This document shows positions 14,887 through 54,700 of a stretch of 64,000 nt of DNA, one piece after another (the stretch's first letter is position 1; every line of letters begins with the position of its first letter). Made by a program: the position numbers and the translations under genes. The notes beneath the pieces are model-generated. The model saw nothing but the letters and a program-made list of their open reading frames with translations, did no database searches and was not told the DNA's origin. The DNA is from Podarcis bocagei (taxonomy: Eukaryota), in NCBI GenBank assembly GCA_964188305.1, contig OZ076893.1; one strand, 5' to 3'.

Positions 14887-14887
<1 letters not shown>

Positions 14888-14934
<47 letters not shown>

Positions 14935-16655: not shown

Positions 16656-18904
16656 TTCTCTAAACACTGGCTTCCTGGGTGTGGTCTTGCAGGTTCCTCC
16701 TGAAGACGGGGCCTCCAGCTCTGGCCTGAGGCTGCTCCTCCCCCAGTAACCCCATGCAGTGGAGGCGAGGGGGGCAAGCTTCAGATTACACAGACACCCC
16801 CCTTGTTGAGACTTTCTTGTCCCAGCAGGCATTTTAAGGAAGTGTTCTGGTTTATGATACTTTTATTACTTCAATGTCTATATGGTTTTTAGACACCACT
16901 TAGAAATGCTACTGATTAAATGGTATATAACTGTCTTAAATAAATAACACACACACAAACACACATTCAAACCAGTTAGATTGAAAGCTTGACTGTCTAG
17001 GCTCAGTGAAGATACAACTGCCCCACGTCCCTCTACCAAGGTGTGAGCCAGGACTGGCTGACCTTTGCATGTTGCTGGCAGGCTGGAGGAAGAGGCCTCA
17101 GAGTACTGGCGCATGTGGATGATGTCACCACCCCCCAACCCGTGAGCCACACTGTGGTCTAGACCCAGACCCCTGACGTTGGGCCAGTTCAGGGGCAAGA
17201 GTGCCATTTCTCAATCCTCCAGAACTACCCTCTGTCTGTCCACACATGCAATTCACCACTGGGATATCAAGGCAGACTTACCAGGGACAGGGAGAGAATT
17301 CTAGAAATCATTTTGCTCTGTTGTTCTTTGCCTGCCCCAAAGAGAGCGAAAGAGGCTGGGCCAGAAATGCAAGAGCAATCCTGAAGGATGAGGCTGACCC
17401 ACAGAAGCGCACAACACCCCACCTGTTGCGCTCACAGCTACAGCTTCCCGGGAACAAATAAGTTCTGAGAGGACTGTGGGGGGCAGTCACAGAGCAGGCC
17501 CTTCCCTCTGGCACCCTCTCCCCCTAGCCGGATGCTCCTTCGAGGAAACAGAACGATGTCAAGTCTCAGGGAGAAAAATGTTTATAACTGCAACAATAAA
17601 ATTGCTAGGCAACAGAATTAAACAGGAGGTGGCAAACAAGCCAGTGGATCTAAAGGGAAAGAGGCCAAGGGGTGCTCCAAAATCACTTGCTGCCTAGCAC
17701 AGGGGCAAGGGAAGCAGCGGGAAGCAGCAGCGGGGAAGCCTCAAGGGGACCAACGGCAGGCTACTTCTCAAGCCAACCTTTTTTCTGGGGGGGGGGGGAG
17801 GCAAACAGGGGACCAGGCCTGTTGTTCTTGGCAGGTTGCTCCAAATGGTGGGCCTGGAGTGATTTTGCCCAGATGAGAAGCCAAGGGATAGAGGCCCCTA
17901 CAGCCATAGCCCTCTGGAATCAGATCACAAGACTGCAGAAAAGACGGCAAGACACCCCCTGCGCCCCCGGAGGGAATCCAAGTCAGTGCAAGAAAAAGGG
18001 GGGAGCGAGAAAGGGGGGCACTTTCACAGCCCCATAGTATGGTGGCAAGGGCATGAGAGCAGCCCCCTTCTGCTCTGCCAGCACCAATGTTCGTTCCTTC
18101 AGCTCTTGAGCAGAGGAGGTACCAAGCGCTCCCTCCTACCAACCCAGAAATGAGTCCGTTGGGCTACAGAGTGGAGCCTGAAAGGAGGAAGAGGTGGGCA
18201 TCAAGTGGAAGGAGGCTGGCATTGGAAAGGGTCAGGGAGGGTGGACGGGGGAGACATGAGCACAGAGGTTTGGGCTGGAATATAAAAATAAAACTCTATG
18301 AGCCCTTGGGGGAAAGCAAAGCAGCCAAGCCACCAAGGTGCCCAACCCCTGACTTCTGCCAGTCCAGGACACTCGGCACCAATGTCTTTTGCAGTCAAAA
18401 ACAAAGGAGGGGAAGATGCCATCCTCAGGAAATCCAGCTTCTGCATGTTGTGCAGTCTTTAGCAGGTTGTAGCATCTGGAAGTCAGCAGAAAGGGGCCAC
18501 AGACACTTGAAACTGACGGACAAATCTCCAGGGAGGGTCAGTCTGAGAAGGTCCAGCGTCCTGAGGATAGAGAGGCACAGCCCCAAACCCAGACAGGGGC
18601 AGTCTCTCCACCATGGTGGCTGCAGCTGCGGCTGCAGATGAACGGAGGGCATTTGCTCTGACACCACTTGGAACAGAAAAGTGCTTCTTGGGGACCGGAC
18701 AAAGTTTCCAGTGCTGCAGGGGTGCCAAAGCCTGCAGGCGGGCAAAGGGACTGGCTGGCAGCATCCTTGGGAGTCTGGAGGCACCAGCTGGTCAGGCAGC
18801 ATCCACAGGGCCAATAGGCAGAGCAACACGACGATGCCGGGCTAGTCTGGGGGAACACGCTGGAGGAGCCGTCTTCAGAGGGGGCGCAAAAAGAGCCCAA
18901 GAAG

Positions 18905-26449: not shown

Positions 26450-27260
26450 CATCGCACGTGCCGTCCCCATAGATCTCTCGGAGGGCTTGGGCTGAGCGGG
26501 GTCCCCTCCTGGCCCGGAACCTGGGAGTCGGGCCGCGGTTTCCCCCCGGCGGCGGTGGGGAAGGGGACGGAGGCGCGCCGGAAGCGCCCCGCGGGGAGCC
26601 GCGCTCGGCTTCCGGTTCCGGGCGGCGACTCGATGGCGGCGGCGGCGGCGCCGGGCTGCTCGCCGTCCCCGTCGGGCCTGGTGCTGCTGGCCTCGGCCAA
26701 GGCCTGGGTGCCGCGCTCGCCGGACGCGCCCTCGGCCTCGCCGGCCGGCCGGGAAGCGCGGCGCCTCTTCCGGCTCCAGCTGAGCGCCGCGCCCGGCCCC
26801 GAGCGCTTCCGATTCGGCCTGAGGGGCGCGGCGGAGTCGGGGGGCGAAGCGGTGAGAGGGGACGGGGAGGGGGGAGGCGGCGGGACCCCTTCCCGGGTCG
26901 CCCCGGGCTTGGCGTCGCGCCTTCCTTCGCCAGGGTGCTTTTCCTTTCTGTGGGATGATGGCGCATGCTCCTCCTCCTCCTCCTCCTCCTCCTCTCATGC
27001 CCCCCAACAACAACCCTCCGAGGCCGGGCCCCAAGGTCTCGCCCAACCAACAACAACCCTGCGAGGTAGACCGAGGCCGACTGCCCCCCCCCAGGTCACG
27101 CCCACTGAGCTCCGTGGCCCAAGGGGGATTTGAACCCAGGCCCTGGTCCGCCCCTCTGGCCCTGCCGCACAGGCTTGTCTCGCCCGCTTACCAGAGGCGG
27201 CGGCTGCCTCCTTCGCCTCCTCCTCCTCCCTGCCTTTCTTCCCCACAGGCCGTCGAAGCT
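26450..27260 (+). promoter_or_regulatory. CpG island: promoter and exon 1 of the SHARPIN-locus gene
   Basis: CpG-rich; E-box CACGTG at 26455-26460; ETS-like CCGGAAG near 26578 and TTCCGG near 26610, just upstream of ATG 26633. Confidence 0.8.
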
Positions 27261-30200
27261 GCTGCCCCAACCCGTCAGACCGGAGTGGGTGCATTTCAGC
27301 TGCTGGAGGGGGCTGCCCAGCCGGGGGAAGCAGCGCCAGGGGCAAAGCCCAGGCTGTTTGGGGCCTTCTAGCCGCTGTCAGTCTTTGCTGGGAAATGTCC
27401 CTCTTCTCGGAGTGGCGCTGAAGGCTTGCCTCTTTCACAAGAGGCCAGCAAAGTCATCCCTTCCTGTACAGGATCTGTTTCTCCCCCACCCACCCCACAT
27501 TTCACAGGATGTCTCAATGTATGAACAATGCTTAGAAAAAGAATTAGGTGCTTCCTAAGTCTTTATTAATTAAGAACAAACAACATCCAGGGATTTGATC
27601 ATAGAATATCCAGCTCATATATCCAAGCAAGGATCATGGTAGCAGCTTGTTTTCGTTTCCCTTGCACTTCCATTTTGTTAAATGCACTGATTTCTTGGAT
27701 CAAGTAGAAAGGCCTCGACATACCTTAGTCCATTGTGTGCTTCAAGTATGCCTGCTCATAATGTACTACTCATTAAAAACAATGACATCCCCACCTTTCA
27801 GTTGCATACAGCAGTACCCAAAATGGCTTGCAGTCAACATGTTTAACAACAGTTTGAGTCCTTGAGACGGTATTGGTGATCCAGCTCAAGGCATGCTTGG
27901 GGGAAACTGATTATCTGGACCCATTTAAATCCAGTTTCAGGCCTGGGCGCAGCACTGAAACTGCTTTGGTTAGTGGCGTTTGTGGATTGTGCCTCATACC
28001 TTCTTGTTACCCCTATAACACCCTGCCTACCACACACAGGCCTCGCACTCATCATGAGGGGCTGTAAACAAATAGGGCAGAACAGGAAAGGACCTGCAGG
28101 CTCCTCTTGCTTCTGCCAGTGGAGTTCTAAAGACACCCCCTCCCTCGATGCAGTATCCAATGTTCCTGCAAGAGACTTGGGGGTTTTCGAAAGAGGACTG
28201 GACAAATTCACAAAGGAGAGGGCTATTGATGGCTGCTAGTCATAATGGCTAAGCTCTGCCTTTGCAGTCAGAGGCAGTAGTGCTTCTGAATAGCAGTTGC
28301 TGGAAACCACAGGAGGGGAGAGTGTGGCTCTTGGGCTTGAATCCTGCTTGTGGCTTTCCTGGAGGCATCTAGTTGGCCGCTGTAAGAACAGGGTTCTGGA
28401 CTAGATGGGGCATTGGCCTGATTCAGCAGGTTCTCCTCCTGTTCTTAGGAGTTCCACTTGCAGAATGGAACTTTCCCCTCCTCTCTCTCCCCTGCAGTCT
28501 GCCATGCACCCTCAAAATCAGCTCTGGGGGGATGGGAGAACCTCTCAAGCAGTTTTGCACAGAGGGAGGAGAGGGGCAAGTCCTGTTGTGCAAGGAGAGG
28601 TCCATCCTTTGAGCTCTTCAGCAGTGGGAGCAGCTTTCAGCATGAGCGCTGATGAGGGGGAGCCTGATGAGACTTGGCTGAAGAACAGAATGGGTGCTTG
28701 GACCCCCGTGTTGCTTGAGGTAAAGAGGCCTCAACAAGAGCTGGTTGGGGCTATTTGACTTTGGACTCGCCCACTAATGCTTTTCTTCCCCCAGGGCCTT
28801 GTTGAGTACAACCTCAGAGACATTTCCTATGAGGTGAAGACTGCCACGTGTCATGAGCTGAAGTTCTTAGCCCGCCCAGACGACCCCCTTGTTTTCCACT
28901 TTGAGGATGAGCATGAGGCACAGAAGTGGTGGACAGTCGTCAGCAGCTCCCTCCAGGAGCTCCAGAAAGGTCAGCTCCTGCCCCGGAAGGCACTTACAAT
29001 GCCAGGGTCCGGCTTCTGGTAGTGAGAGAGGGCATGGCTTGAATCCTGCTTCCAGGTTTCCCACAGGCATTGGATTGGCCCCTGTGAGAACAGGATGCTG
29101 GACTAGCTGGGCCATCGGCCTGATCCAGCGGGCTAGTCTGATCTTCTTATGTTCTGTGTCTGCCTGCTGGAGCACTTCTTCTAAAGTCTCTTCTCTCCCC
29201 AGCTACTGAGGGAAGCGGTTTGCTGACAGGACGGCCTTCTCCCCTTCCCTTGGCACTTTTCAACTCTCTGTCTGACATCGATGTCTCCCTGCCCTTGGAG
29301 CTTGCCAGGAAAGGTGGGTGGCTGATGGCACAGGACACTTGTCCACTGGCAGTGTGCCCTTGAAGACACATCATAAACATTACTCAGCTGCCAGGAAATG
29401 TGATGTTTGCATATCTGAAATTTCCTTTTACCTGTATCGGGTTAGGCAGCTGGTTTTGTTGCACAGTGGTAATGAGGAGTGGGTGCATTTTGTGAAGTAT
29501 TGTTGAGAAGGTGAATTGAGAGAGAACTTGGTTTCAGTAATTGCCCAAAATCTCCCCCATATTTCTATGGCTTAGAAGCCATTTTGGCAAGCAAGAGGTA
29601 AACAGATGAATAAATAATATCTACTTAAAAAGCAAGCCATGTTTACACTTCCTGTTGAACCTTTCCTTCCCACTGACGCTAATCCACTGGAATGGGGGTT
29701 TCATTTGGTGCCCATGCAAGTATTCAGTTATTGATTGCATTAAAAGCACTTGGTTTGTTTTATTTCCTTCTATGTTGACCTCTTCCCTGGGTGCCTGCTT
29801 GATCCACCACCTCAGTGGTGAGGAGTCACTGGAAATACCCAGGGGCCACATGCAGTTAAGTAGGAGGCCGCATCCAGGGCTTGGGTTGGAGGCTCCCCAG
29901 CCGTGCTTTGCGGTTTGCCCTGTATAACTCACCAGAGCAGCATCAGTGTCCTGAAGGAGTGGCTTCTTGAGCTGGATGAGGAAGAGGGGGCTGCCCTTGC
30001 CACCCAGATTGTGAGCCCCTCCAACTGCCCCAACTTTTTTCATTTTTTTTTTAAAAGTAAAACAGCCAGTCAACATAGATGAAGAGAAGAGTGTCATATA
30101 TTGCATTCCTATCCCACCTTTCCTCAAGGTGGTTGACACAGGTCCCCTCCTCCCCATTTTATCCTCGCAGGAACCCTTTGAGGTGGGTTAGTCTGAGGGT

Positions 30201-33200
30201 GAATGACTGGCCTAGTTCCACACCCGGTGAGCTTTGTGGCTGACTGGGGATTTGAGCCCTGGCCTCCCAGGTCCTAGCCTGAGTTCTGCTGCAACTGAAG
30301 ACAACTAAAACCAATCCAACAGCTGCACGAGGCCTCTGTGTGACTAAGAAAAGAGCAGGGTACAAATGCTCAAAACAGAATAAGATAAGAAAGCTTTTCC
30401 AACTCACTTGGAAGGAAGTCTTGGGTCTGACCACCTGCAGCAGCAAGCCAAGTGTGGGGCAGGGGTGGGGCTGCTTTTGAGAGCTCTTGCTCAGCAGTGG
30501 GTGGCTCCCTAGGAGGTTTTCCATCGCAGACCTTGGAGAAGGGCGGGAGGCGGGAGGCTTGCCCGAGATGGGGGGTGCACAACTTGACCTGGCGGCTCAT
30601 GCCTGGCTTTGTCTCCTCCTCAGAGGACCTGGCGCTCCACCTGTCCACTGCTATTGAGCTCGGGGACGAGGAGGAGGCGATGCGCTGTGCCACGCTGCTC
30701 GCCCAGCAACACGCGGCTCTGCGGATCCTGCTGAAGGAGTCCTGCTACCCCACAAGCGAGATCAGGTGGGAGCGGAGGGCTGGGCAGGGAGCCGGTGTCT
30801 CTGGAGGAGGCTGGGTGGGTTAGGCTGGGTGATTTGGGGCCAATCCCCTGCACGCCTCCTCTTCTGAAGATGGCCGGTTGCGGGACACGCTGTGCTCATC
30901 TCACTGGCTGATTCCCTTCCTTTTAGCATGAAGGTGCAGGTGGAAGACGCCACTTGCTCAACGAGCATCACCACCCGCGTCCACACGTACACCACCATTG
31001 CAGGGCTCAGGCAGAAGGTAACCCGGGCACAGCTTTTCAGAGGCGGGGATGCTGTCTTCTGGCTCCCTCACTGGGGCAGCTTCTGGGGCAAAATGCCAAC
31101 GACTGCCTGGCTGCTTGGCCTGCAGCAGAAGCCTTCAGACTCCCACTGACCCCGTCTCTGCTTCCCCCAGGTCTTTCAGGATTACGGATTCCACCCCAGC
31201 GTCCAGCGCTGGATTATTGGCCAGTGTCTCTGTGTGGATGACCGAACCGTTGGCTCTTACGGGATTCAGAAGGACGGAGACACAGCCTTCCTCTACCTGC
31301 TCTCGGCAAAGGGTGCCCACCTCTCTGAGCAGCGCTTCAAGGAGGACAGGGACTGGGTGGTGCTGCAGCCGCCCCCCTCGCCCCTGGCGGACAACACGGA
31401 TGCCAGGCACAAATTCAGCACCTTGCCCACCTGCCTGCCCAAGAAAAGTGAGTGGGGGCCTCTTAGTTGGGGGGGGGGAGGGGAAGAGGTTGCATCTGGC
31501 TAGAAGCAGGGGGTTCATTTTGGAACCCTCAGAACAGGTTACACCTCTCCCCAACGGCTTTTCTGCATGCAAGTCAAGGCAATTTAAATCAGGAAAACAA
31601 AAGACGAAATTCAGTTACTGAAGTCCAGTTTCTCATTTATTCATATCTTACCTCCTCTGTGGTGCAATTCTGACCACTAATTTACAACTAAATAGTATAT
31701 TGTTAACGTTGTTTTATCCTTCCAGCCAAGCTTTGCATCTCTTTCTTACATCTGGATACACAGCTTGTGACAATGTGTGGTTAAAGGTCCAATCCTAAAA
31801 CAGGGTATAAATTCATAAATGATGCTAATAGGAATCTGTCCCTTTGTGCTGGGGGTGGGCTTAGGTTTGGCTGAGGGAGGGAGGGACATAGGAACTTGTA
31901 TGCTGAGCACTCTTAGCTCCTCCCGCTTCTTGTCCCTGTTGCTCCTTCTTGCTTTGCTCTGCCTTGGACCACCCCCCAAAAGAGGAAACCAACAGCACAA
32001 AAATGACCTGCCCATGACCAGTATAGTGGTACCTCTGGATACGAACGGGGTCCGTTCCAGAGCCCCGTTTGCATCCTGAAGTAAACTTAAGGTGCGTGTG
32101 TGTGGGTCGTGTTTTACCGCTTCCACGCATGCGCGTGATGTCATTTTGTGCGTCTGCACATGCGCGAGCGGTGAAACCCAGAAGTAACACGCTCCGTTAC
32201 TTCCGGGTTGTCACGGAGCGCAACCCGAAAATATTCATCCCGAAGCTACTTCAACCCGAGGTCTGACTGCAGGTGGCAGTCAGGCCCTTTGGGAGTCAGG
32301 AGGACTTTATTTCCTGAAAAGGAAATGTATCTGATTTTTGTTAGAGTGCAAATCTGCATACCTGAGAAATGATCCAACCAGTTTTTCATGTTCATAGAAA
32401 GGCCTCCTTTAATGTATCTGGGAGAGTTTAGAGATTAACCATAGGGACAACATTTATTTGTTTAACTTTATTTAAACAAAGCTTGAGAACAATCATTAAA
32501 ATCTCTCCAATAGTTAACATGCTTATATTCAGACTGATCGATATTAACCTAGCTTTTGTTTAAGAGAAACTTTGCACTTGCGAAGTTCTTAGACCTCCTT
32601 CTTCTAAGTCTCCTTCTTCTGTTGCAGGTGTGAAAAATTCTAACAGGAAGAGGGATGTCGGTGAGAGCAGCCACTTCCTGGGAAAATTCCTCCCTGGCCA
32701 CTCGCGAGCCCCTCCGCCCCCGGCTGCCGCCCCTCCTCCCTCTCCTGTGCCGGTATGTACTCTCTCTGCTAAGTGGTGAAACTCAAGGCAGCCGTCTCGC
32801 CATATATATGCCCCCTCTCTCTTTCCCAGTCCCTGGGCTCCCTGTGGCCTTGTCTCCCCTCACCCCGTAGTCTGCTCAAGAAAGGGGCCAGAGCACCTTC
32901 TGGGGAGGGGGGCCTCATCACCCAGCAGGAAGCACAAGTGGGAGAGGGGTGGTCCTGGGGCACGTGGCTGCATCCTGGGCTATCCTTGCCGGCGCCACGT
33001 CTAGCGGCCTCTTCCTCTTTCTCCTCCTCATCTCCCATTGCAGACTGGCTGGTCTTGCCCCACCTGCACCTTCATCAACAAGCCCACCCGGCCCGGCTGC
33101 GAGATGTGCAGCACAGACCGGCCTGCCAACTATGTGGTTCCCGGGAGCTACAGGCCGGATGAGGTGGAGCTGTGGCGGATGCAGCAGGAGAAGGAGGGCA

Positions 33201-36200
33201 TCTTACAGTACCAGAAGGTAGGTCTGGGTAGCTCCCTTCCTGTGCCTCACAGTCCACTGGAGAAGCTCCCTGCAGGGGTCTGGAGCTTTGCTCTGCTCCC
33301 AGCTCTCTTGGCTCTTTTCTCTAGCTCCCTCTCCTTATGCAGCTCCTTAATGTGGCGTTCCCAAAGCACAGGAAGGATTAGACTCTGATTAATAGAATAC
33401 ACACAAAGGCTTGACCAGCAAGACTCTGGGAGGAGTGTGTATAATAATTCCTGTCCACCCCCTTGGCCCAGGTCGTTTTATTCACAAAAGAACTTTTTAC
33501 ACAGTGCTCATAAGAACCAATCAGATTTCCTCTGAGCGTTTCAAAAAAACCCACGTGGGACAAAGTTAAAGTTAAAACTACAAAGAGCTAATTTCCTACT
33601 TGAGCATGCATATGTAATTCAGAGTAAATAAAAGAGGAAGCAAGGAGGAATGCTTTTAGGAAACTCCGGAGGTCATAAGCAGCAATAAACAGGAGAGGAA
33701 GGATAGGTAGTATTTACCATCTCCTTGTGAACGATTAACAAAGTACATCAAAGCTACCTTCTAGCTTTATGGCCCCGGATGCCTGATGCAGCAGCCGGCA
33801 ACTGGCCTGTGTCCTAGAATGCTGATACGTGCCTGTCAGGCAGAGAGAAAAGGGCAGGAGAGGGAAAATGGCTTAGATGTAGAAGCTTCTGGGATTGGAT
33901 CAGAAATTATTGTCAATGTATCAAACCCAGTCAACGCAATGTTTTCATCACGTACACGATGGCCTGATGCATCTTTTATAATTCCTCATAGTAATCCCAC
34001 CTCTGGATATTTGCACTCCTACACTTAAGAACCCCAAATGTGTCCTGCAGCAGCTGGATGAGGCCAAGGGGAGCCAGTCCAGCCCAGCCGGCTGTTGTCC
34101 TAGTGGACCACCAGCTGCCTCTTCTGGGAAGCCCACAGGCAGGACCTAAAGGCAGCAGCAGCAGCAGCACTCTCCCCACTTGCGATTCCTCCCAGCACCT
34201 GGTGTTATTCAGAGGCCTTTGCTGCCTACAAAAGCGGGCAGGAAACATCGTCATTGTGGCTGGTAGTGGTCCAAGAAGCCAGCTCCCCAGCTGTGTTCTG
34301 GAGGCTTTCAAAAGTATTCCCCACTTGAGAGGCACTTTCTGTTTCAAATTTGCTTGTAGAGTCTCCATGCAGATTCTTCTTAATTCTGGGATTTCTAATT
34401 AGATGATGATAGTAAGTTCAGCTTACTAAATTTATTGATAACTTCACACAACCGAACGGAGTCCCAAAGCTATTTACAAGAGAAGTGCTATAAATTTACA
34501 TCGTAAGAAATGTGCTAAAAAAGTGTGCATCCCAAATCACTTAAGTTCTGCCCTGGGGTAGGTTGCTGCCTGCCCAGAAGCCATTCTGGTCTACGAGTGG
34601 AGTATAAATTAAGGAACAAAACTGCTGAATGGGGTGGAAATGAACATGTCCTGCTTCCGAGGCTGCAGATGCCTGGAGTCCACGTTCAGGATGGTCCTGA
34701 GAGGGAGGTCAGGTTCCCCCTTCCCCTCTGTCATGGCCGACGTCACACCTCTGAGTTTAAACATCTTTGGGCACAATCTCTGCCTGCAAAGGAAGGGAGG
34801 GAGGAAAGAGCCCTGTACCTTTCTCATGAAGTTGTCTCCCAATGCCGTGGTGCTGTCAGCTGGTTGATGGATGGGGAGCTAAGGGTCTAACATACTGGCC
34901 AAATCCTGCTCCCCAACTATGTAGGTGATGTTTAGTTCTTGCTTGATTCATTTTCTTAAATAATGAGATACTAATTATGATTTGGTTGTCCCTTTCAATG
35001 TTTCGTCGGTGGTATATTTTTAGTGTATTGTTTTCATCACATTTCCTGTAAATACAAAAAACATGTTGTTGTCGAGTGCACCAGAAAAAGAATAGAATTT
35101 CAAAATCTCTCGGGCTCCGTCCTTCTCCTTCTGTGCTTTCCAAGGAGGGTGGGCTCTCAGGGAGGGCTGCAGTCCATTCTGGGGTGTGGTGGTGGTGGTG
35201 GTGGTGAAGGTGCATCAGGCTCCAGGCAGCAATCTCTGGCGGCGGCAGCAGTGGTGGCGGCAGCACCTGACGACTCTCTTCTCTTCTTTCTTCTTTCTCT
35301 TGTGGCAGGAAAAAGGAAGGAGAGAAGACGGTTCCGCTGTGCCCTGTGCCCACAGCCTGGGAACCCCGGACGACTTTATCCACCTCTCCTCGGAGTTCTC
35401 ATAGCCCTCCTCAGAGCCGGGGCCGCCATCGCTACCACTGCCCCTCCCAGCCTTGCAGTGGGGACGTGTGTTAGTCCTGGCTGCAGCACCAAGGGCTGCC
35501 AAGATGAGCCAAGCGGACAGTGAAGCCCAAGGGGCAGGGCAGGGGTGGGCTTCTGTGGCTGCCCCCCACCTTCCCCTGCTGAGAACAAGCAGCTGAGAGT
35601 CCTTGCTGGCCCTTGGCGGCTTCACTGGCTGGCCTTTGAGAAAGGCCATATTGGGGGGGGTGTGCTTTGAGAGCTCCCTGCGACAGCAGCAAGAGCTGCG
35701 TCCCACCTGAGCAACTTTTGGGGTGCAGCCATGCAACGTTTGTGGGTTTGCCTAGGCTCCCCCCTTGCCCCTCCATTCCACCTGGGTCTTGGAGTTCAGC
35801 CCATTTCCCAGCTCAACTGGCAGCCGCACAGAGCCTCCCTGCCTCTCGCTCATGGAAGACTGGAGCTGTGTGAGCCTCAGAGGCTGGAGCCAGGTTGGTC
35901 TCCTGGGCCACGAAAGCCCCTGCAGTGGGGCTGCCACTTGAATACCATGAGCTGTTCATAGGTTGTGATCCCCACCATGAAAATGTGTGTGTGTTTGTGC
36001 ACTGTTTGCCCAGCGGAGGCAGTCGATCTGCTGTATTTGACACTGTGCATTGGATCTGTGGGCTGCCTGCCCAACCCATGGAGCCCGTTGCCCTGCCAGA
36101 GCTTCCTTCCTCTTTGCCCCACAGTGCCTTCCTCCCTCATTTGCCTCTGGCTCTCCTCCGCTCTGCCCTCAGGCCTGCACAGCCAGGGTGTCGCTGCTGC

Positions 36201-38938
36201 TTGCCGGGAGCCTCCCGCTTGCTGGCTTTGTGCTCCTCGCTCCGTTGGGGCCTGCGTTGAAGGTCTCTCCTCCCTCTGCCCCCCATGGAGGCTGCTCTCC
36301 CCATGTGCCTTTGACCAGGAGAAGCCATGGCCTGCCCAGCCCCACAGGTCAGGCAGCGTTTGAACCGCAAGGCCAGGCTCTGCCTTGGGGACTTGCTTAT
36401 GCTGAAGCTGGACTAGAAAGAGAGACCCTCTGCCGTGATAGCACTTTGAAAGAGAAATGCTGTAACTCCCTCCCCTGAAGGTGGCTGTTTCTCGGTGGGT
36501 CAGGGGGTGCTGCCGCCTGAGCGTTGGGGGTCTGCCCCAGCTGCTGCTTGTCCCAGCCAGCAGATCTTGGAGCAAGTGGCTCCCCTCGCCGTGGGGCAGT
36601 CGTTGCTGCCCTGGCCCCTGATGGGGCAGCAAACGCCCTTCTCTCCCTCTCTGTACTGAACACTGATTATTCAGCAGCAGAAGTTTCGGGACCTGTTTTG
36701 AAATGGCTTGATTTCTGCATAACGTGTTTGTAAATTTGATTTTTAAAAAAATGAATTGGAGAGCAAATCCTTTGTTCTATTAAATGATTCATTTGGGCTT
36801 GACGGTCCATCCTGGTACTTCTCTGTAGTGTCCTTGATGGGGAAAGGGGGCAGGGGCTGTTCAGGAGGTATGCGTGTGGGTGGGGGGATGAGAGAGGGGG
36901 GGTCCTCCTGATCCAAATAAGTCTCCCCACTGTCCTCTCTGAGCCACAAAGTAGTGACTGAGGGGTCTCTGCTGTGAGCTTCCCCTCAAGAGAATTTCGG
37001 TGAGGCTCTCTTTGCCACAGACGGCCCTTTTGCCTACAAAGGAGTCGCTACAGCCACTTCAAGGGTCGGAGCAGCCTCACTGCTTCGGGGTACATAAAAA
37101 CAAGCCACCAAAAATGGGACAGCAAAAGAATAAAAACGTATCATAAAACTGAGCACTGCCTTAAATTGTTTGCCGGAACAAGGAAGTCTTAGTCATGTGC
37201 CTAATTTCAACTAGCAGGGAGTTCCACAAGTTCAGGCCCACTACACAGAAGGGGCAGGAATTAAGTTGTTGCATGGACAATGAGGTCTGCTTGCACATGG
37301 AGTTTTCCCCCTCCCTTCATATCCCTCACCCGCTAAATCTCTGAAGGGTTGGGGGATACCCCAGAATGTGTTCAGCAGCCCCCCAGAGGCGTGAGGGGAG
37401 AAGTCTTGTTGTGCAAGCAGACCCCCACACCTAGCACCACACTGGATTCCACCCAGTGTTTTATTCTGTCGCGGCTTTTAAAATTTTGCTAAGTTCTGCA
37501 TATTAAATATTTTATGACCTGCTATGAGACATTTTGCAAAAAGTGAGGCACAATTAAACAAGCATAGAGGAGGAGGGAGCCAGCAGAAAGCTCCTTCCGG
37601 GGGTTGGACTAGATGACCCCTGGGTTCTAACTCACTCAGTTCCATAATTATGTGAATGCTGCTGTGATGTGCTTGCCAGACATCTCAGGATCCCGATTCC
37701 CCAAGTGTTGGAGACTGAAAGCAGGAAGAAGCTGTCCTTCTCGTCTGTCGTTTCTAGAGCAGAGAGCCACTTGGAATGTAAACAAGCCCTGTAATAAAAT
37801 TGCAGAAGAATAAAGCACACCCACTGGGTTGGGTCAGCAGCAAAGGCCTTCACAGGCCTGAGCAAGCAGATCCGTCTTGGCAAGATCCTGCGGGTGTCAG
37901 TTGCCCTGGTCAGGGGAGGGTCTTCTGCAGGCGGTGAGGTCACCCCCTTTACAAAGTCTCGTTCTCCGCCTTGCCCCCTCCCCAAAACATGCATGCAGTT
38001 GCTGGACTGCCTTAGAGGGGGTGTTGCAAAAGGCCTCCTGAGATCAGGCACCCAAAGTGTGCATTATCTTCCAACATTCTTGCTGCTCTTCAGAAGGTGA
38101 TGCTTTGGGACACCACCTTCATTTTATGTCTCTTCCCAGAGCGTTTGTTCCAGAGTCTTGTATCCTAGTTTTCCCATCAGGCTTTTCGGGGGGGGGGACC
38201 TGGCACCTTCATTTCTGTCATGGACCGGCTGGATGCAGAGGAGTGGGGCGAGGCTCCAGCCAGGGAACCCCCAGAGGAAGAAGGCTCAGAGCCCGTGAAT
38301 TGGTGGTGGGACAAGGATGCCTGGTCAGAGGGAGCAGACTGGGAGCAGGAGGCGTTGGAGGCTGAAGAGGGAACAGGGCTTAGTGAGCAAGAAGAGGCTG
38401 TGGCAGAGAGCAGTCCAGAAGCAGAGGCAGGAGAGGAGGGGAGACCGGCTGCTGAAGAGTCCAGGGGGTCTCTCCCTCCTACCGCAACCAGCTCCCCTCT
38501 CCGCTGGTCTCCCAGAACATGCAGAGAAACGGAAAGGGCAGAAGAGCTGCCACAGTCTCCGCTTGCTTGAAACAAACTCTGGAGAGGAGGGGACTTTGGC
38601 AGCTGTGGGAAGGCGGGGGTCCTCAGTCCTTGCAACTGCCTTATTGGGGCAAGACCCACTGGGGAAAGTTGCTGGGATCACTGCGCCTGAGCTGTTTTGG
38701 TCCCTTGAATAAAGAGTTAACTTCAACTATACTGGGTTTTTTTTAATTGCTGACCTTCAACCGACTCCGGTTCGTGATAATATCTTTAGGCACCAGGCAA
38801 AAATGTTCCTCCTCCACTGTTAAAACAATCTGCGGCCTGTTAAATGTGCCTGGGGGTGGGCAGGTTGTGTTTTTCTTGTGTTATGCATTTTGCATTTTTA
38901 TGTTGTAAACCACCCTCTGATCTTTGGAGGATAGGTAG

Positions 38939-38992
<54 letters not shown>

Positions 38993-41900
38993 TATAATAG
39001 TAATGGGGCTTCTGCCCCTTTTTGCAGAGTTAGCTGACCCTCCAAATCTCAGCAGCCTGGGTGGTGGGTGTGGCCAGGCGGAGCCCCTACCCACCTTTAA
39101 CCAGGGGACTGGGCAACCACCACCTGCCCCTCTTTGCCCCCTCCAGGCCTTGGAGCAAGAGCGGCAGCAGAACTTCCAGCAGTTGCAGCAGCTGGACGAG
39201 GCGGCGCTGGTGCCCAACCGGGAGGAGATTGAGTGCCGCATCTGCTACCTGAACGTGGAGCCTGGCGAGGGCGTCCTGCTTCGGGAGTGCCTGCACAGCT
39301 TCTGCAGGTAACCTGGCCTGCCTGGGGCAGGAGGGAGCAGGGGTGGGGGTGGAGGAAGGAAGGAAGGGAGGGTTCTGTGGCCTGACCCCGCTGCCGCCCC
39401 CCCTTCTCCCTCTCCAGGGACTGCCTGCGCCAGCTGATCAACTGCAGCGAGGAGCCCCAGGTGGCCTGTCCCTTCCGGGACGACTCCTATGCCTGCAGCA
39501 GCCACCTCCAGGACAGGGAGATCCGGGCGGTGAGTCCGCAAGGCTCAAGGATCCCTCCGGCCGGGTCCCTTGGGCAGGCTGGCGGGGCAGCTCAGCTCCC
39601 CCTTGTCCTGCCACGGTCGTCAAGAGCGGTTGGAGATGCAGAGTGGCATTTTGAGCAGGCCAGCTCCAGAGGTCTTTTTTGCAGAGCTTGGTCCTCCTGC
39701 AGACGGAGGGAGTGGAGGAGGCTGCCATGGCCACATGCTCCTTTGATTTCCACCCCCTTCCGGCCACGGAAGCCAAGGGGTGCCCCCCGGCCAGCCCATG
39801 CCCTGCCCTCCCTCTCTCAGGGGCTCTGAGCCGGCTCCCTGGTCTCCGCAGCTGGTGTCGTGGGACGAGTACGAGCGCTTCCTGGAGCGGCGGCTGGCCG
39901 TGGCCGAGAGCAGGGCCCAGAACAGCTACCACTGCCAGACGGCCGACTGCCTGGGCTGGTGCATCTACGAGGACGACGTCAACGAGTTCCGCTGCCCCAT
40001 CTGCTGGGCCCTCAACTGCCTCGTCTGCAAGGTGAGCCCAGGGGACTGGCTATGGGGCTGGAGGCCCACAGGTGGGTCTTGGAAAGAATGAAGGAGAAGT
40101 GCAGGCAGACTAGATGATCCTTGGGGGTCCCTTCCAACTCTACAGTTCTATGATTCTGGGGGGGGGGCTAGGGTGCTGAAGGTGGCCAGAGCACAGCTGC
40201 CCCCTTCCTCCAGCATCTTGGAGGTCTCCCTCCCCCATTCCGTCTTCTGAGCTGTCAGCAGCCTCCGGACTGTTTTCTAGCATCTTTCAGAAACACTGGA
40301 GGGGAGAAATCTCCTTGAAGGAATCAAGTTAATGTATTTTTCGCTCCATAAGATGCACTAACCATAAGACACAGCTAGTTTTTAGAGGAGGAAAACAAGA
40401 AAAAAAAATTCTGAATGAAAGAGTGGATGTATGATTTTTGAGGTTCATGCTGTGGCCACAGACATGTGATTTGACGGTGAATTTGGGGTAGCCCAATGCA
40501 AAAAACCTGAGGATCCATGGGCTTTTACCTCCTGGACAGCCTCCTTTATCACTCCCGATCGCTTGCTGATCAGCTGCTTCCTTTAACTCCCACTTCCCTC
40601 TTTGTTTGTTTAAGTGTCTTTTCCTTAGCTGGAGCAGTTTTTTGCTCCTCTTCTTTTAATTTCTCTCCTCATTGCTTTAGGATTCCTATTTCCTCTTCTT
40701 GCAAGTTCGCTGTCTTTAATAATAATAATAATTTATTATTTATACCCCGCCCATCTGGCTGGGCTTCTCCAGCCACTCTGGGCAGCTTCCAAAAAAATAT
40801 TAAAATACTGCAATACATCAAACACTAAAAGCTTCCTAAAAGTCTGGTAGTTGTGGTTCTCTTTGACACCTGGTAGGAGGGCGTTCCACAGGGAGGGTGC
40901 CACTACCGAGAACTTCCTTTGCATCCTGGCCCCATGCTTCAGCAGCCCCTGGGGCTCCTGGGCACCGGAGGGCAAGGGAGGTGGTCACGGTAGGGGGCAG
41001 CCTGGGTTGACACATGCAAAGAGCCAGTTTGCAGGGGAAGGGCAAGGCCCCTGGGGGATGCTTCACCACATAAAAAGGCCCTGCAGAGAGGTGTAAGAAC
41101 ATAAAGAGAATTTGCTGGATCCGGCCAATGGGCCTCCTAGTCCAGCCTCTCCAGAGTGGACAAGCAGATGCTCCAAAGAGGAAAGCAGGATCTGACAAGA
41201 GCAACTCTCTCATCTTGCGGGTTCCAGAAACTGGTCTTCAGAAGCATCACTGCCTCCGACTGGCGGCTGAGCAGAGCCCTCCTGGCTGGGCACCATCAAC
41301 AGTCCTGCCCTCCATGAATTTCCATCCATCTTGGTGGCCGTCCCTGCCTCCTGCGGGTGGGAGGTCCACAGTTTAACTAGGTGCTGCCAAGCTCTCCATC
41401 TCCAGGTTGTGGCAGCTTTTGACTTTCCAAGAGCGACAGTTAAAATTGGTGTGAGGCGATGCCTATTCTGCCGTCTGTACGTGTCGGCGTGGCTTAAGAC
41501 GCCTCGGCCACTCGGGGAGGGTCCTGGGGCTGCTGCCCACCCCCAGGCCAGTTTGAGCAGCAGAAAGGAACCCTTTGCAGGGACGCCAGGGGTTTGATTC
41601 TCTGCCCTCCACCCGCAGGCCATCCACGAGGGCATGAACTGCAAGCAGTACCAGGACAAGCTGCAGTTCCAGGCTCACAATGACGCTGCTGCCCGGGAGA
41701 CCAGCAACATGCTGAAGGTGAGCTGGCCAGGAGGGGAGGGGGCTCTATTTCACGGCAGGAGCTGGGGCCTGCCCGCTTCTTCCCACCCCAATGAAACGTT
41801 CAAAGCCCAAGTTCCTTGGCATGATATTCAGCCTTGTTGGCTGGGCTGTGGGCACCGGCCTTGGGATACCTCGAGGGGATCAATGCTGGGGGGGGGGAGA

Positions 41901-42766
41901 TGGGGAGCAGCTCAAAGGGACTGGACAAGGGCCTGTTTTCCCCCTGCCCCAAGACGGGGCTGACGGTCTCCACATGACAGGGGGTTGGACTAGATGACCC
42001 GTGGGAGCCCTTCCCCTCTATGGCTCTATGGCCACCCTCTTTCTGTCTCCGCCAGACGCTGGTGCAGCTAGGAGAGGCCATGCACTGTCCCGTCTGCCGC
42101 ATCGTGGTGCAGAAGAAGGGGGGCTGCGACTGGCTCCGCTGCCCTGTCTGCCAGACGGAGATCTGCTGGGTGACCAAGGGGCCGCGCTGGGGGCCTGGGG
42201 TAAGCGCGGAGGGAGGGAGGGGGCTCAGGACGGAAGCTGGGGCGGGGGCTGGCACACCAGACAGGAGGAGGGGCGAGAGCCAGGCTTTGCTTCCAGAAGG
42301 GACTGAGGGGGGGAGCCTGGACGAAAAGGGGGGCTGGCTGGTTAGCTGCTCTCAATCTTCACAGGGGGGCAGCCAACCCGTCCAACAGATGACGTGGCCC
42401 AGAGTGCTTTGCAGTGTGCAGAGGGTATCCCAGTAGAGAGATAAATGGAGGTGGTGAGGGCGGCCAGAGGATGGGAAGTTTTAAGGGCTTTCTCAGAGGG
42501 AGATGGACTGTGTGCTGAAGCAAGTCTGAGGCCAGCAATGCCCTGCCTTGTGGACTTTGGGAGACAGGCGTCTTGGGAAGGGGGCTTGGATGCCTCGAAA
42601 GCACCAGATCCTTGGGAAGCTCCACTCTGCAGAACTCCCGGGCGGCTGGTCTCCCCCTGATGTGCTTTGTCCTCCTCCCTGGCAGGGTCCCGGTGACACC
42701 AGCGGAGGCTGCCGGTGCAACGTGGATGGGGAAAGGTGCCACCCCCATTGCCAGAACTGCCACTGA
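26633..42766 (+). CDS. SHARPIN: SHARPIN-locus protein with a full HOIL-1L/RBCK1-type RBR domain (PH-LTM-UBL-NZF-RING1-IBR-RING2, 696 aa)
   Basis: 14 GT-AG phase-consistent exons: 26633-26851, 28795-28969 (PH; [11 protein letters not shown]), 29203-29313, 30624-30765 (LTM; [22 protein letters not shown]), 30927-31017, 31171-31447 (UBL; [11 protein letters not shown]...[11 protein letters not shown]), 32628-32752, 33044-33217 (NZF; [10 protein letters not shown]...GCEMC), 39147-39307 and 39418-39529 (RING1), 39852-40031 and 41619-41717 (IBR), 42056-42199 and 42686-42766 (RING2, ending CHPHCQNCH*). 2091 nt; AATAAA at 43299-43304; lies between MAF1 and CYC1. Confidence 0.9.
32024..32269. mobile_element. 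Tigger/pogo-like MITE
   Basis: Termini (C/T)AGTGGTACCTC...GAGGTCTGACTG; inverted homolog of 46483-46728. Confidence 0.75.
33351..34023 (-). mobile_element. Solo LTR (673 bp) just after the NZF exon, antisense to the SHARPIN-locus gene
   Basis: TG...CA termini; TSD CTTAA at 33346-33350 and 34024-34028; reverse-complement homolog of 54220-54889. Confidence 0.8.
35309..35404 (+). CDS. Candidate alternative terminal exon A of the SHARPIN-locus gene (469-aa isoform without RBR)
   Basis: Long polypyrimidine tract CTCTCTTCTCTTCTTTCTTCTTTCTCTTGTGGCAG; read in phase 0 after the NZF exon it gives [31 protein letters not shown]. No transcript evidence available. Confidence 0.45.
   Translation, partial: EKGRREDGSAVPCAHSLGTPDDFIHLSSEFS
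38181..38570 (+). CDS. Candidate alternative terminal exon B (acidic, Trp-rich tail; 567-aa isoform without RBR)
   Basis: Acceptor TTTTCCCATCAG; open for 129 codons in phase 0 ([22 protein letters not shown]...PQSPLA*); AATAAA at 38708-38713 followed by a G/T-rich tract. Confidence 0.5.
   Translation, partial: AFRGGGPGTFISVMDRLDAEEWGEAPAREPPEEEGSEPVNWWWDKDAWSEGADWEQEALEAEEGTGLSEQEEAVAESSPEAEAGEEGRPAAEESRGSLPPTATSSPLRWSPRTCRETERAEELPQSPLA
38938..39004. repeat. (AAT)n microsatellite
   Basis: Direct reading; similar tracts at about 14888-14947, 46990-47054 and 57655-57712. Confidence 0.95.
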
Positions 42767-43642: not shown

Positions 43643-48596
<4,954 letters not shown>

Positions 48597-49549
48597 CTTG
48601 CAGAGGAGCCGGCCAGCCCAGCCGCCCACAAGGCACCGCGCGGCGGAAGGCGGTCCGGCGTCACTTCCGGAGGGGCGGGGCTTCCCGGTCGGAGGCGGAG
48701 ACAGAGACGGGGGGAGGAGTCAGAAGGGACACTGCGGGGGCATCTAGTCCAGCCCGGGAGAGGGGGGCGCCCAGCCTCGGCTTGACAGCTTCCCCGCCTT
48801 CTGGCTGTCGAGGCGGCACCTCCTTCCTGGCCACCTGGAGCCCCGGGTTCGAGTTCTGCGCTCCAGAGCGGGCGGCTCTCCTCGTCAGGCTGGGCTCCCA
48901 GTCCCTTCCTCGTCGAGCTCGAGCCTCCTCCACGCCCGGCAGAGCCCAGCTGCGGAACTCCCTCCCACGCGAGGAAGAAGCCCCTGGCCACGAACTCAGG
49001 CGCAGTAAGAGAGGACCAGGCCCATCCGCGGAGGGGGGGGAGGCTGTGGGTGGCTCTCTCGGATGCAGTCCTGCTTTTGCCTCGCGGCCCCGGGGAGGCT
49101 GGGCTGGCTGGGCCCCGTGGCCGGATCCCGCTTTGGGGCTCTTCTTCCTCGGTTCCCAGGCCAGGCTTTTCTCTTGTTCCCGGAAGTTGAGGCTGCGTGT
49201 CACTCTTCATATTTGTAGCTCTACGGGGAGGGCGAAAGAATCCCCATAGAGCTATGAAAGTGAAGAGAGGGCCTTCTCCTCCTGCCGACGGGACGCTTCC
49301 GCGTTGAGCCGGAGAGGCGCCGCTGAGTCCTTTCCTCAGCTGGAAGCGGGAGGGGGGCCGCCCAAGGCCAGCCCCGCAGTGCGACCCGCTTGGAGTCTCG
49401 CCCGGCTCCCCTTGGCGAGGCTCCTCGGCCTCCAGCGGGAAATGCCAGGCGGGGAGGAGCCGCTCTATGGTGTCACCTCCTTGCGCTTTCTATGTCCCCT
49501 CTAGGAACGGCGTGCTCCGTCGCTTTAACTCCTTCATGACCCTCGTAGG

Positions 49550-50203
49550 GGTGGGCCCATCACATTGCAAACAGAAGGGGAAGAAATGGAGGCAGTGAGA
49601 GGTTTTACTTTCTTGGGCTCCATGATCACTGCAGATGGTGACAGCAGTCACGAAATTAAAAGACGCCTGCTCCTTGGGAGAAAGGCGATGGCAAACCTAG
49701 ACAGCATCTTAAAAAGCAGAGACATCACCTTGCCAGGAAAGGTCCGTATAGTAAAAGCTCTGGTTTTCCCAGTAGGGATGTATGGAAGTGAGAGCTGGAC
49801 CATCAAGAAGGCTGATCGCCGAAGAATGGATGCTTTTGAATTCTGGTGCTGGAGGAGACTCTTCAGAATACCATGGACTGCAAGAAGATCCAACCTCTCC
49901 ATTCTGAAGGAAATCAGCCCTGAGTGCTCACTGGAAGGACAGATCTTGAAGCTGAGGCTCCACGACTTTGGCCACCTCATGAGAAGAGAAGACTCCCTGG
50001 ACAAGACCCTGATGTTGGGAAAGATGGAGGGCGCAAGGAGAAGGGGACGACAGAGGACGAGATGGTGGGACAGTGTTCTTGAAGCCACCAGCATGAGTTT
50101 GACCAAACTGCGGGAGGCAGTGGAAGACAGGAGGGCCTGGCGTGCTCTAGTCCAGGGGGTCACGAACAGTCGGACACGACTATAAACGACTAAACAACAA
50201 CAA
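49550..50203 (+). mobile_element. BovB (RTE) LINE 3' fragment with an open 206-codon RT tail
   Basis: FTFLGSMITADGDSSHEIKRRLLLGRKAM...MYGSESWTIKKADRRRMDAFEFWCWRR...; (CAA)n tail; closely related to 24005-24480. Confidence 0.92.
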
Positions 50204-51701: not shown

Positions 51702-54700
51702 CTACTTCCAGAAAAGCACATTCCAGAGCAGAAGCCAGCAGGGGTAGACGAAGATGGCGATGAAGGGGAAGACGATGGAGCCGTAGAGGTGGTGGTCCAA
51801 CAGCCCTTCAGCAATCGCCTGCAAGAAGCGCTGCCAGCCCTCCAGCAGGGAGATGGGGTACTCAATGAGCTCCTGGTACAGGAAGATGCAGAAGAGAAGT
51901 GTGGCCGCTGGCGTGACCAGGACCAGCAGCACAGCGTAGAGGTACCTGGGGGAGGAAACGGGGAAAGAAAGCTCTGGGCTCCTGCGGGCACACGGGCAGG
52001 GGCAGGCCCACCCCGAAAGGGCAGGGTGTGTTGTGGGGTTCGTTGTTAAAATTTGCATGCCTCCCTTTGCCTGTAGATCACAGGGCAGTTCACAAGATAG
52101 AAGTACAAGATAAAAACACAGAATACACGATAAAACAAGACGAAAAACGTTTCCAAGTCGCACAGAACAACTTCATCCCTCCCTGCTACTTCAAGATGAA
52201 AACCCAGATGTGACATACTCAATTGCTAGATTTTGCGCTGCCATGATGGATATTCGTCAAAGGGTGGTTTGCGCCACAAACTAGGCCCCAAATGCAAGAC
52301 CTGTGCTCCTTCACACTCCCTCTCTTACAGTCACTTTTAACCGTTTGTACTTGTTTCTATCTTTTTAAGTTATGTATGATATCACCTTTTAACTACTCGT
52401 TTTTATCCCTTACCTCATTTAAGTTTTACGCATTCTATTTATCAGTATTTTTTATCTTATGCAGGTCTGTGACCAAAATAAAGTTTGATACAAATACTGA
52501 GGAACAAAAACAAACGGAGAACCCCCACCTTCCTAAAGCAACCGTTCCTTCTTCAGCCATGGACAGGGTTGAGACACCCACCGCCCTGAAGGACAGGACC
52601 AAGGGTCCAGGGCCACAAATTTGAAAAGCTGAGAAGCTTGCCTGGGGGACACACTCCCCACCCCTAAATTCCGCAACACCCCCACAGAAGGATAATGGGG
52701 AGGACTCTATTCCTGCAAAGCACCTTTTGGACAAAAGAGTCCTATTTGTATCTCCATTTTGAAACTAAGGCCAAACACATCGTCCTGATGTGGGCAGCTC
52801 TGCTTTGCGTGTCCTGAGGAAGCCCAACATACAGAAACAAATTTGGCTCTGCCAAGCATTTGCCTTCTTGCTTCTTCCTCAGGCCCTTGGCTTTCCCCGC
52901 AAAGAACTGGTCCAGAAGAGGGGGAACGCGGCCACTTCATTAGGCCAGGGATGGGGAGGCTGCAAGTGCCCAAGTGATGCCATTAGACAACAGCTGCCAC
53001 CTTCCCTGATGTGTTGGCTGCAGCTGAGGGCAGCTGCGAACTCCCAGCAACACTGAAAGGCCTCTGTCTCCCTTTGTAGTTGGAGGACAGAGCGCAGGGG
53101 GAGGAGTGGCAAGGAGACGCCCCGTCATCTGCCCTGGGCAATTCTGGTGATCCCTGTCCTTTGCAGCCCAGTTCTTGTGGGGTGGGGGCAGAGAGGGAAG
53201 CAGGCAGCAGCCCCAGGGCGTACGTACTTGGGCCCCGTGGGCTGGACAAGGGCAGCGACAGGCACCATGGTGACGGCCAGCAGGAAGCCCAGGGAGAAGT
53301 TGATGAGGGTGATGCAGCCCAGCTGCATGGCCAGGTAGAGGAGCGAGACCAGCTTCAGCGTCATCCAGCCACGGTCGCTTCCCGAGCCCGTCAGGACCCT
53401 GCGGGGCAGAGAGACAGAGCCAGTCTGCAGGCGGCACAGCCACAGCCCCTGGAAAAGAAGAGCAGCAGCAGCCTGGCCCTTGCCCCAGAGAGCGCTGGGC
53501 AATCAGGCACCCCTTCAAGCTCTGCACGTCTCGCCCTCTCCCTGCCTTGTGCCGGGGCAGGCAAGAGTCGCCCCAGGGCCCCCACCTGGCCGGGCCGTCT
53601 CCTCCCCTCCCTCCCCGTCACCTGTGCGTGTTGTGGGGCAACGCCAGCCCCGCCACGTAGATGGCAATGACCGTCAGCACCACAGCCTCTGACTCCGAGA
53701 CGGGGAAGTGGTGTGTGGCCACCTGCTGCCCCAGGATGGGCACGAAGTAGAGGGCCAGCCCCGTGGCGTGGCAGATCAGCAGCGGGGGCACCAGCGTCAG
53801 CAGGCTGGGCTTGGGCTCCTGGGTGAGAGAGGAGGGCAGAGGGGTCAGGAGAAGGGCCCCCTCCCTGGGTGGGAGGGCCAGGAGTCGCGGCTAAGGCTGG
53901 TGGGGGTTTCGGGGGGGGGCAAAAACAACCCCACCCGTTCCCCAAAGAAGAGTTCATTGTGCATTTGGGGATCTCTGCTGGAACAAGGGCAGCAACTGCA
54001 CCGAAAAGCAGGACCACTTTGACCCCCACAGCACGCCTGGCCCAGGGCAGAAGAGGGGAGGGGGCTGGCAAAGCCTGGCTCTTCGGGGCCTGCAGACTCA
54101 GGAGGATCTTCAAGCGCATTTTAGTCTCAAGGTGTCCAGGGAGCATCACATTTCCAAGCCGTTCTCTTCCTCAACCAGCCATGTCTTTTTGGGGTGCTCT
54201 CTCTTTGTTGCCCATGCCATGTAGGGGTGCAGATATCCAGAGTGTGGGGGTCAGGTGGGATTGCTATGAGGAATTATGAACTATGGAGCAAGCCATTGTG
54301 ACAGCAATGAAAGCATGGCGTTGACTGGGTTTGATTCATTGACAATAGTTTCTGATTGAATCCCACAAGTCTCTGCACCTCGGCCATTTGCTTTCTCTAC
54401 GCCTGACAGGCACGTATCAGCATTCTGAAACACAGACCAGCTGCATCAGGTATCCTGGGTCATCCAGATAGAAGGTAGCTTTGATGTAGATCTTAAGGGC
54501 CAGGAAGAGAGTTCACAAGGAGAGGGCAAATGCTGCCATCCTACCTCTCCTGTGTACTCCTGTCTATGACCTCCGGGGTTTGGCTGAATGCATTCCTCCT
54601 TTTATTCCTATTTTATTTACTCTGAACTACATATGCGTGCTCAAGTAGGAGATAGTTTCTTTGTAGTTAACAGAATTTCTTCTGATCTGACTTTGTCCCA

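Follow-up and report, generated by a model that had tools for sequence, protein, structure and literature searches.

Two described systems come close to the arrangement that we report here. The calcitonin/CGRP gene has an alternative last exon with its own stop codon and poly(A) signal, which competes with downstream splicing, and the C-termini of the products differ. In the family of UBL-NZF-RBR proteins, where RBR stands for RING-IBR-RING, RBCK2 is an RBR-less splice variant of RBCK1/HOIL-1L and, according to the account of Tatematsu et al. (2008) given in PMC4064560, inhibits the full-length ligase. The literature that could be searched describes SHARPIN as an adaptor that is not catalytic, and no paper there was found to deal with a SHARPIN that carries an RBR or with two forms of the protein; public annotation contains both forms in some species. 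We analysed a stretch of 64,000 nucleotides (nt) of contig OZ076893.1 from the lizard Podarcis bocagei (assembly GCA_964188305.1), called the window below, which holds a SHARPIN gene. The intron that separates the NZF exon (33044-33217, plus strand) from the first of six RBR exons contains exon A, very probably a genuine alternative last exon of this gene.

The junction was seen in RNA. Contigs from four runs (X1, X2, X4 and X14), belonging to three related organisms and four studies, were placed on 32930-38929. Runs X1, X4 and X14 contain a GT..AG joint that skips 2091 nt, reported as 33215 to 35307 with a 'cut +2', which is the same as 33217 to 35309. Run X2 has this junction as a matching pair of loose ends, one of them, AAAAAGGAAGGAGA, behind 33218 and the other, CAGTACCAGA, before 35307. 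One X14 contig of 1919 nt joins 329 nt of exon A to the whole NZF exon (177 nt on the NZF side) and to 1413 nt upstream of it. Upstream of the NZF exon, contigs extend for another 1.4 kb. The sequence of one loose end is the end of the exon at 32628-32752; as this joins that exon directly to 33044, the contigs are spliced mRNA, not DNA.

The extent of the exon could be read from the same contigs. From 35307 the cover is unbroken to 36764, 36770, 36797 or 36817 in the four runs, and depth is about zero at 36930-37129, after exon A. On the other side, 34330-35130 of the intron carries low-depth contigs only. The contigs end within about 35 nt of an ATTAAA at 36779-36784 on the plus strand, the predicted poly(A) signal of exon A. 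The exon comprises a coding part of 31 codons at 35309-35404 (plus strand, stop codon at 35402-35404), defined by the RNA junction, conservation and the relatives of its peptide, and a 3' untranslated region of about 1.4 kb, 35405-36800, placed from contig cover and approximate at its end.

We compared the window with the corresponding loci in Zootoca, Crotalus tigris, alligator and Xenopus laevis, which are orthologous to it. When 32900-39400 was aligned by blastn to the Crotalus, alligator and Xenopus loci, only the NZF exon, a block around exon A and RBR exon 1 matched. The exon A block starts at 35261, 35263 or 35277 in these comparisons and ends near 35406. It includes the acceptor region (35261-35308, plus strand), a pyrimidine tract with repeated TCTT/CTCTT that ends in CAG, and lizard, alligator and Xenopus have the TCTT-rich tract in common. 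The exon has the same place in two of these loci: in alligator it lies at 16357-16449, inside the NZF-RBR intron (15647 to 20035), and in Xenopus laevis at 12375-12461, inside the corresponding intron (10682 to 15864). In Zootoca 144 of 144 nt are identical (48 of the acceptor region and 96 of coding sequence), against about 90-92% across the intron, and the chance of such a match at 91% identity is about 1e-6 (0.91^144). The ATTAAA hexamer and its surroundings are also nearly identical in Zootoca. Lizard and alligator exon A differ at 5, 5 and 9 first, second and third codon positions, and five codons are synonymous.

The first 17 nt of the exon (35309-35325, GAAAAAGGAAGGAGAGA) are purine-rich and identical in lizard, alligator (locus L003, from 16357) and Xenopus (locus L004, from 12372). 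The identity extends to synonymous positions and suggests a constraint that may go beyond coding, such as a splicing enhancer.

The 31-residue tail encoded by exon A starts with EKGRRED (EKGRREDG...), includes L-D-D-F-I-H-L and ends in S-E-F-[SC]. The same tail forms the C-terminus of short sharpin proteins in 12 other species. Among squamates these are Gekko kuhli (463 residues), Crotalus adamanteus (460) and Ophiophagus; among archosaurs Alligator (422), Gallus isoform X2 (466) and an anseriform known from run assemblies (477); among amphibians a caecilian-like species (497), Xenopus tropicalis (444), Rhinoderma isoform X2 (483) and another frog (462, nine contigs). The remaining two are platypus (465) and an unplaced species closest to the coelacanth (500). 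A word search limited to the tail (protein P0123, residues 437-477) gave four candidates and returned three proteins, and nothing further. The C-terminal 11-residue stretch is kept in squamates, alligator, birds, the caecilian-like species and platypus. Teleost sharpin proteins have an end that reads QQEKGRRE... directly after a shortened linker, and exon A therefore probably predates the split between ray-finned and lobe-finned fishes.

Some gene models read the intron in other ways. A Crotalus horridus model of 772 residues (P0212) has exon A as an internal exon, reading ...DDFIHLSSE, then 27 unrelated residues and then the RBR. This internal reading is probably a prediction error; the model places exon A, independently, between the NZF and RBR exons of a rattlesnake. 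In Gallus, sharpin models X1 and X3 (P0206 and P0205) have another tail after the NZF linker, with DPSNPTQPSH-like repeats, which suggests that the chicken intron may contain a further terminal exon. No RBR-bearing sharpin model turned up for chicken, and pheasant has one.

The tail has no Pfam match. In an AlphaFold2 model of the Crotalus adamanteus short form (mf1419e8de9cc, from an alignment of 49 sequences) it is disordered, with a predicted local distance difference test score (pLDDT) below 50 at residues 432-460, and a 20-residue helix at 411-430 follows directly on the NZF; this helix covers the linker kept in sauropsid SHARPIN. Docking of the tail within its own protein was considered and rejected, as the model gives no fold for the tail and only the helix at 411-430. 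The tail fits the loose pattern of an ATG8-binding motif, F-x-x-L after acidic residues, and is a candidate for one. A second candidate was the PUB-interacting motif, whose core is Asp-Leu/Met-Tyr (PMC5031558). It was set aside because there is no D-[LM]-Y in L-D-D-F-I-H-L...S-E-F-[SC].

The alternative to exon A is splicing to six RBR exons on the plus strand, at 39147-39307, 39418-39529, 39852-40031, 41619-41717, 42056-42199 and 42686-42766, the last of which includes the stop codon; all are defined by an open frame and AG/GT splice sites, and Pfam finds RING and IBR in them. When the RBR is aligned from chimaera to lizard, 23 columns of Cys/His are invariant and GCDW[LI]RC is kept, a stretch that presumably holds the catalytic cysteine, as in HOIL-1L. 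Exactly 298 residues separate the CEMC motif of the NZF from the C-terminus in 71 fetched sharpin proteins that have at least 600 residues, among them proteins from birds, reptiles and frogs, from coelacanth and sturgeons, and from a chimaera. In public annotation, RBR-bearing records of 680-730 residues, named 'sharpin' or 'RBCK1-like', come from squamates, turtles, crocodilians, birds, frogs, a caecilian, coelacanth, sturgeons and a chimaera. As no methionine precedes the IBR, the RBR part depends on the upstream exons to supply its start codon. The conservation of the RBR and its fixed length argue for a long product that is translated and functional, and we infer from public gene models and this conservation that this species expresses the long form as well.

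Contigs of runs X2 and X4 also match 33056-33109 only, the 54-nt NZF core, and diverge on both sides of it, reading ...CAERPKGYIL after the match. They resemble a transcript from a second locus in the same animals, the RBCK1/HOIL-1L paralogue, which would mean that these lizards have two HOIL-1-type RBR genes.

In the model that we propose, splicing of 33217 to 35309 and cleavage after 36779 would give a 469-residue adaptor with no ligase domain, made up of PH, UBL, NZF, the linker helix and, at the C-terminus, an acidic tail that is conserved and disordered. Where exon A is skipped, 33217 would join 39147, giving a 696-residue form with a predicted ligase of the HOIL-1 type (RING-IBR-RING). 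The two outcomes being mutually exclusive, the choice of 3' end would decide whether the ligase domain is present. We are confident, if not certain, that exon A is a genuine alternative last exon and that the two forms are exclusive outputs of one donor. That they would amount to a switch we infer on good grounds. Exon A has a conserved pyrimidine tract and begins with purine-rich sequence, both of them features often met in regulated exons, which suggests that its choice may be regulated.

The mammalian gene, compared here through platypus, a bat and two rodent proteins, bears on this model. Platypus SHARPIN (465 residues) has the NZF exon, an 80-nt GT..AG intron and a last exon that encodes the same C-terminal 15 residues, and the DNA of that last exon is 89% identical to 35364-35399 of the window. 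By tblastn no RBR exon was found in the platypus locus, fetched to 10 kb past the gene, and CYC1 starts 1.1 kb downstream of SHARPIN. The bat gene has the same layout as that of platypus, with a last exon that reads VTRSEDGPSLPGPRSLDALLNLSGDIH and a degenerate tail; no RBR exon was found in the bat locus, and CYC1 lies about 1 kb downstream. Two rodent SHARPIN proteins end just after the NZF, a few codons before the point at which the bat protein enters its last exon. For platypus, the comparison makes a solid case that the mammalian last exon is the homologue of exon A. In the platypus and bat genes this last exon is constitutive and the only one. The earlier note on this DNA had suggested that mammalian SHARPIN arose by fixation of an intronic last exon. 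The tail exon of platypus, the failure to find an RBR and the closeness of CYC1, with the bat likewise, agree with that suggestion, and the evidence supports a reading of mammalian SHARPIN as a short isoform that became fixed, its ligase exons presumably lost.

Could the short form be the only one made, with the RBR joined to the NZF in computer models only, or too rarely to matter? Lizard SHARPIN would then already resemble mammalian SHARPIN in function, and there would be no switch. Exon A has a contig depth no lower than that of the shared upstream mRNA contig in each of the four runs (129-171, 50 and 16 for exon A against 121, 45 and 14 upstream), the depth of the intron contigs is lower after exon A than before it, and the near-full-length sharpin sequences that come from run assemblies only (Logan; P0015, P0123, P0138 and P0157) are all short forms. 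The contigs show no junction to 39147, on a stretch that ended short of it, at 38929. This explanation is nevertheless unlikely, as it leaves the state of the RBR unexplained: the 23 Cys/His columns that do not vary between chimaera and lizard, the length of 298 residues to the end in 71 proteins, six exons that are open, have intact splice sites and are compatible in phase, and an RBR exon 1 that in snake, alligator and frog matches the NZF exon in its degree of conservation. Such purifying selection requires a translated product, and the RBR part, with no methionine before the IBR, could not supply one by itself. Less probable again is the reading of exon A as a cryptic exon plus poly(A) site, tolerated as a by-product, whose protein has no function of its own; this would fit a tail that matches nothing in Pfam, is disordered in the AlphaFold2 model and is absent from two rodent proteins. 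A by-product would not be expected to be identical at 144 of 144 nt to Zootoca in an intron of 91% identity, nor to be the only conserved island of that intron out to Xenopus, at a lizard-Xenopus divergence of roughly 350 million years. Its C-terminal 11 residues are kept from squamates to platypus, and the changes between lizard and alligator are most frequent at third codon positions. The preferred reading, of two exclusive outputs, has points against it too. The runs were only guessed to be RNA, from 18 small candidate runs, and assembled contigs give neither abundance nor true 3' ends; they contain no poly(A) tail or 3'-end read, and the cleavage site is taken from where contigs end. Contig depths, which are no measure of abundance, hint that the short form is dominant in these samples and that the long form might be rare. 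Co-expression of the long form is taken from the NCBI models of Podarcis, Lacerta and Zootoca and from the conservation of the RBR, and none of the public lacertid gene models has the 469-residue form. On the mammalian side, the last exon of the bat may be homologous to exon A by its position and a weak peptide resemblance.

A further possibility is that the same intron holds a second genuine last exon. The earlier note had placed the gene's longest intron at the NZF/RBR boundary, which our rebuilt model of 14 exons bears out (33218-39146, plus strand, 5929 nt, the longest of 13 introns and the one that holds exon A). It had then named two good acceptors in it, 35309 and 38181, and a set of products and poly(A) signals whose coordinates we could reproduce: the NZF donor 33217 spliced to 35309, 38181 or 39147 gives 469, 567 or 696 residues, respectively, and a hexamer scan of the intron finds the ATTAAA at 36779 and AATAAA at 37129, 37793, 37809 and 38708. 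Four further poly(A) hexamers lie at 33627, 33684, 37502 and 37553. As for the acceptors, the AG and an open frame are present at both, but by sequence alone both stand mostly at the level of chance, and any frame runs into a stop sooner or later. The intron holds 463 AG, and a crude pyrimidine score ranks 35309 8th and 38181 23rd. Position 35309 rises above chance because of its RNA junctions and its conservation, and there is nothing comparable for 38181. The part of the earlier note that took 35309 for the start of an alternative last exon has thus stood, on the junction from 33217 found in the contigs of all four runs examined, the only conserved island of the intron and a tail peptide found across tetrapods. 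When acceptor conservation was checked against the Crotalus, alligator and Xenopus introns, 35309 was conserved and 38181 was not.

The candidate exon at 38181, exon B (38181-38745, plus strand), would be tissue-specific and give a 567-residue form with an acidic, Trp-rich tail. It can point to an AG and a moderate pyrimidine tract at 38181, an open frame of 129 codons, the AATAAA at 38708 and contig depth at 38130-38530. That depth, however, comes from many short contigs of 90-95% identity, which have joints other than GT/AG and are loose at both ends, and not one of them connects to 33217; we read it as purine-rich look-alikes from elsewhere rather than as expression. The junction from 33217 to 38181, which the earlier note had proposed to count, is absent from the contigs of the four runs. 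A word search with the 133-residue open frame found no protein relatives, and the frame is no longer than chance allows: a stop-free run of at least 133 codons occurs in 66% of composition-matched shuffles, and the same intron has six other open runs of at least 123 codons. By blastn exon B has no match in the Crotalus, alligator or Xenopus loci. It is 88% identical to Zootoca, which is below the average of the intron, and indels of +2, -16 and +1 break its frame there. We rejected exon B as a last exon and read it as ordinary intron sequence; of the alternatives considered, a genuine exon B is the least probable, and hardly to be expected.

The gene itself is the SHARPIN orthologue, with the PH domain, the UBL/NZF part and the position between MAF1 and CYC1. 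A Pfam scan of the 64-kb window gave the order Maf1, SHARPIN, CYC1 and GPAA1, with matches on the minus strand to Maf1 (20493-21002), Cytochrom_C1 (44136-45075) and Gaa1 (57802-58344), and the order MAF1-SHARPIN-CYC1 is common to the loci of this lizard, platypus, bat and alligator. The coding model runs over 14 exons at 26633-42766 on the plus strand, its frame is open and all 13 introns are GT..AG. Both forms share a 5' part of eight coding exons (26633-33217, with AG/GT splice sites and an open frame) that encodes 438 residues, with PH, LTM/UBL and NZF domains and the linker helix. These exons lie at 26633-26851, 28795-28969, 29203-29313, 30624-30765, 30927-31017, 31171-31447, 32628-32752 and 33044-33217, all on the plus strand. 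The last of them, the NZF exon, has its donor after 33217 in phase 0, the branch point of both isoforms, and its DNA is 82-88% identical to that of alligator and Crotalus. Pfam matches are Sharpin_PH (PF16764) on the exon at 28795-28965 (E 1.3e-20), with a weak match on exon 1, Zn_ribbon_RanBP on 33044-33217 (E 9e-9) and a weak match to the ubiquitin domain on 31171-31446. The nearest proteins are 'sharpin' models of Podarcis, Lacerta and Zootoca; the proteins closest to the window exons carry the LTM domain PF25393 and reach at most about 98% identity per exon, and tblastn with the Podarcis models matches the shared exons.

The 5' end of the gene varies between models. In Podarcis muralis, NCBI models X1, X2 and X3 use alternative first exons within intron 1, at 27737-27968 and 28504-28794, and these putative starts would swap the first half of the PH domain for unrelated sequence. 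The start at 26633 is used, among Podarcis models, only by P. lilfordi and P. raffonei X1. Within the NZF-RBR intron, an interspersed repeat of about 670 nt (33351-34023) lies outside the coding and splicing logic of the gene. An inverted copy, 75% identical, is found 21 kb downstream at 54220-54889, and the repeat is also matched by numerous short RNA contigs of high depth that come from elsewhere. It has no counterpart in the orthologous intron of Zootoca and is therefore a lineage-specific insertion. The intron also has an (ATA)n run at 38935, and elsewhere in the window there is a run of N at 3380-3518. Long open frames at 2-2089 (696 codons, at the start of the window), 2923-3288 and 49529-50182, all on the plus strand, look like fragments of retroelement polymerases.

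Our understanding of what the two outputs might do is more tentative. It is possible, though we would not yet call it the probable case, that in non-mammalian jawed vertebrates SHARPIN is a regulated gene with two outputs, that the tail of the short form is a docking motif, and that the choice of 3' end sets the composition of LUBAC, the complex that assembles linear ubiquitin chains. The long output would then be a second HOIL-1-like ligase, a catalytic subunit of LUBAC, and mammals would have a frozen short form, with the motif lost in therians. The LUBAC of birds, reptiles, amphibians and many fishes may hold a second HOIL-1-like ligase, its presence set by 3'-end choice.

Whatever the fate of the docking proposal, the preferred reading of exon A would change how the adaptor is seen. 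The adaptor form would not be a mammalian invention: it would be an ancient isoform, its exon kept from frogs to platypus and probably in teleosts. It would also give a simple route to mammalian SHARPIN, in which the early last exon was kept and the ligase exons were lost. The comparison exposes a conserved C-terminal motif that is absent from two rodent SHARPIN proteins and should be of interest to researchers in the field of linear ubiquitination. In practical terms little is gained: the 469-residue form is missing from lacertid models, and the P0212 snake model probably misreads exon A.

Set beside the known systems, the long form is like HOIL-1L in its arrangement of NZF, linker and RBR, and its end, ...CQNCH, presumably matches that of HOIL-1L. 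It differs in that the lizard protein has an N-terminal Sharpin_PH and is encoded at the SHARPIN locus. Short SHARPIN resembles RBCK2, the nearest precedent, since both belong to the same UBL-NZF-RBR family and in both alternative processing removes the RING-IBR part; RBCK2, in contrast, comes from the RBCK1 locus and lacks the PH domain. Mammalian SHARPIN is like the short lizard form in its locus and its PH-LTM/UBL-NZF layout, and the tail in platypus is the same. The lizard gene, however, keeps the six RBR exons, and its adaptor form is optional. It also keeps a HOIL-1-like linker helix of 33 residues after the NZF, whereas the linker is shortened in platypus, bat and teleosts. Unlike calcitonin/CGRP, the choice in SHARPIN removes a whole catalytic domain, and the short outcome was apparently fixed in mammals with loss of the downstream exons. 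Mechanistically this is an alternative last exon of the ordinary kind; the novelty lies in the gene concerned, the age of the exon, the conserved tail and the bearing on the origin of mammalian SHARPIN.

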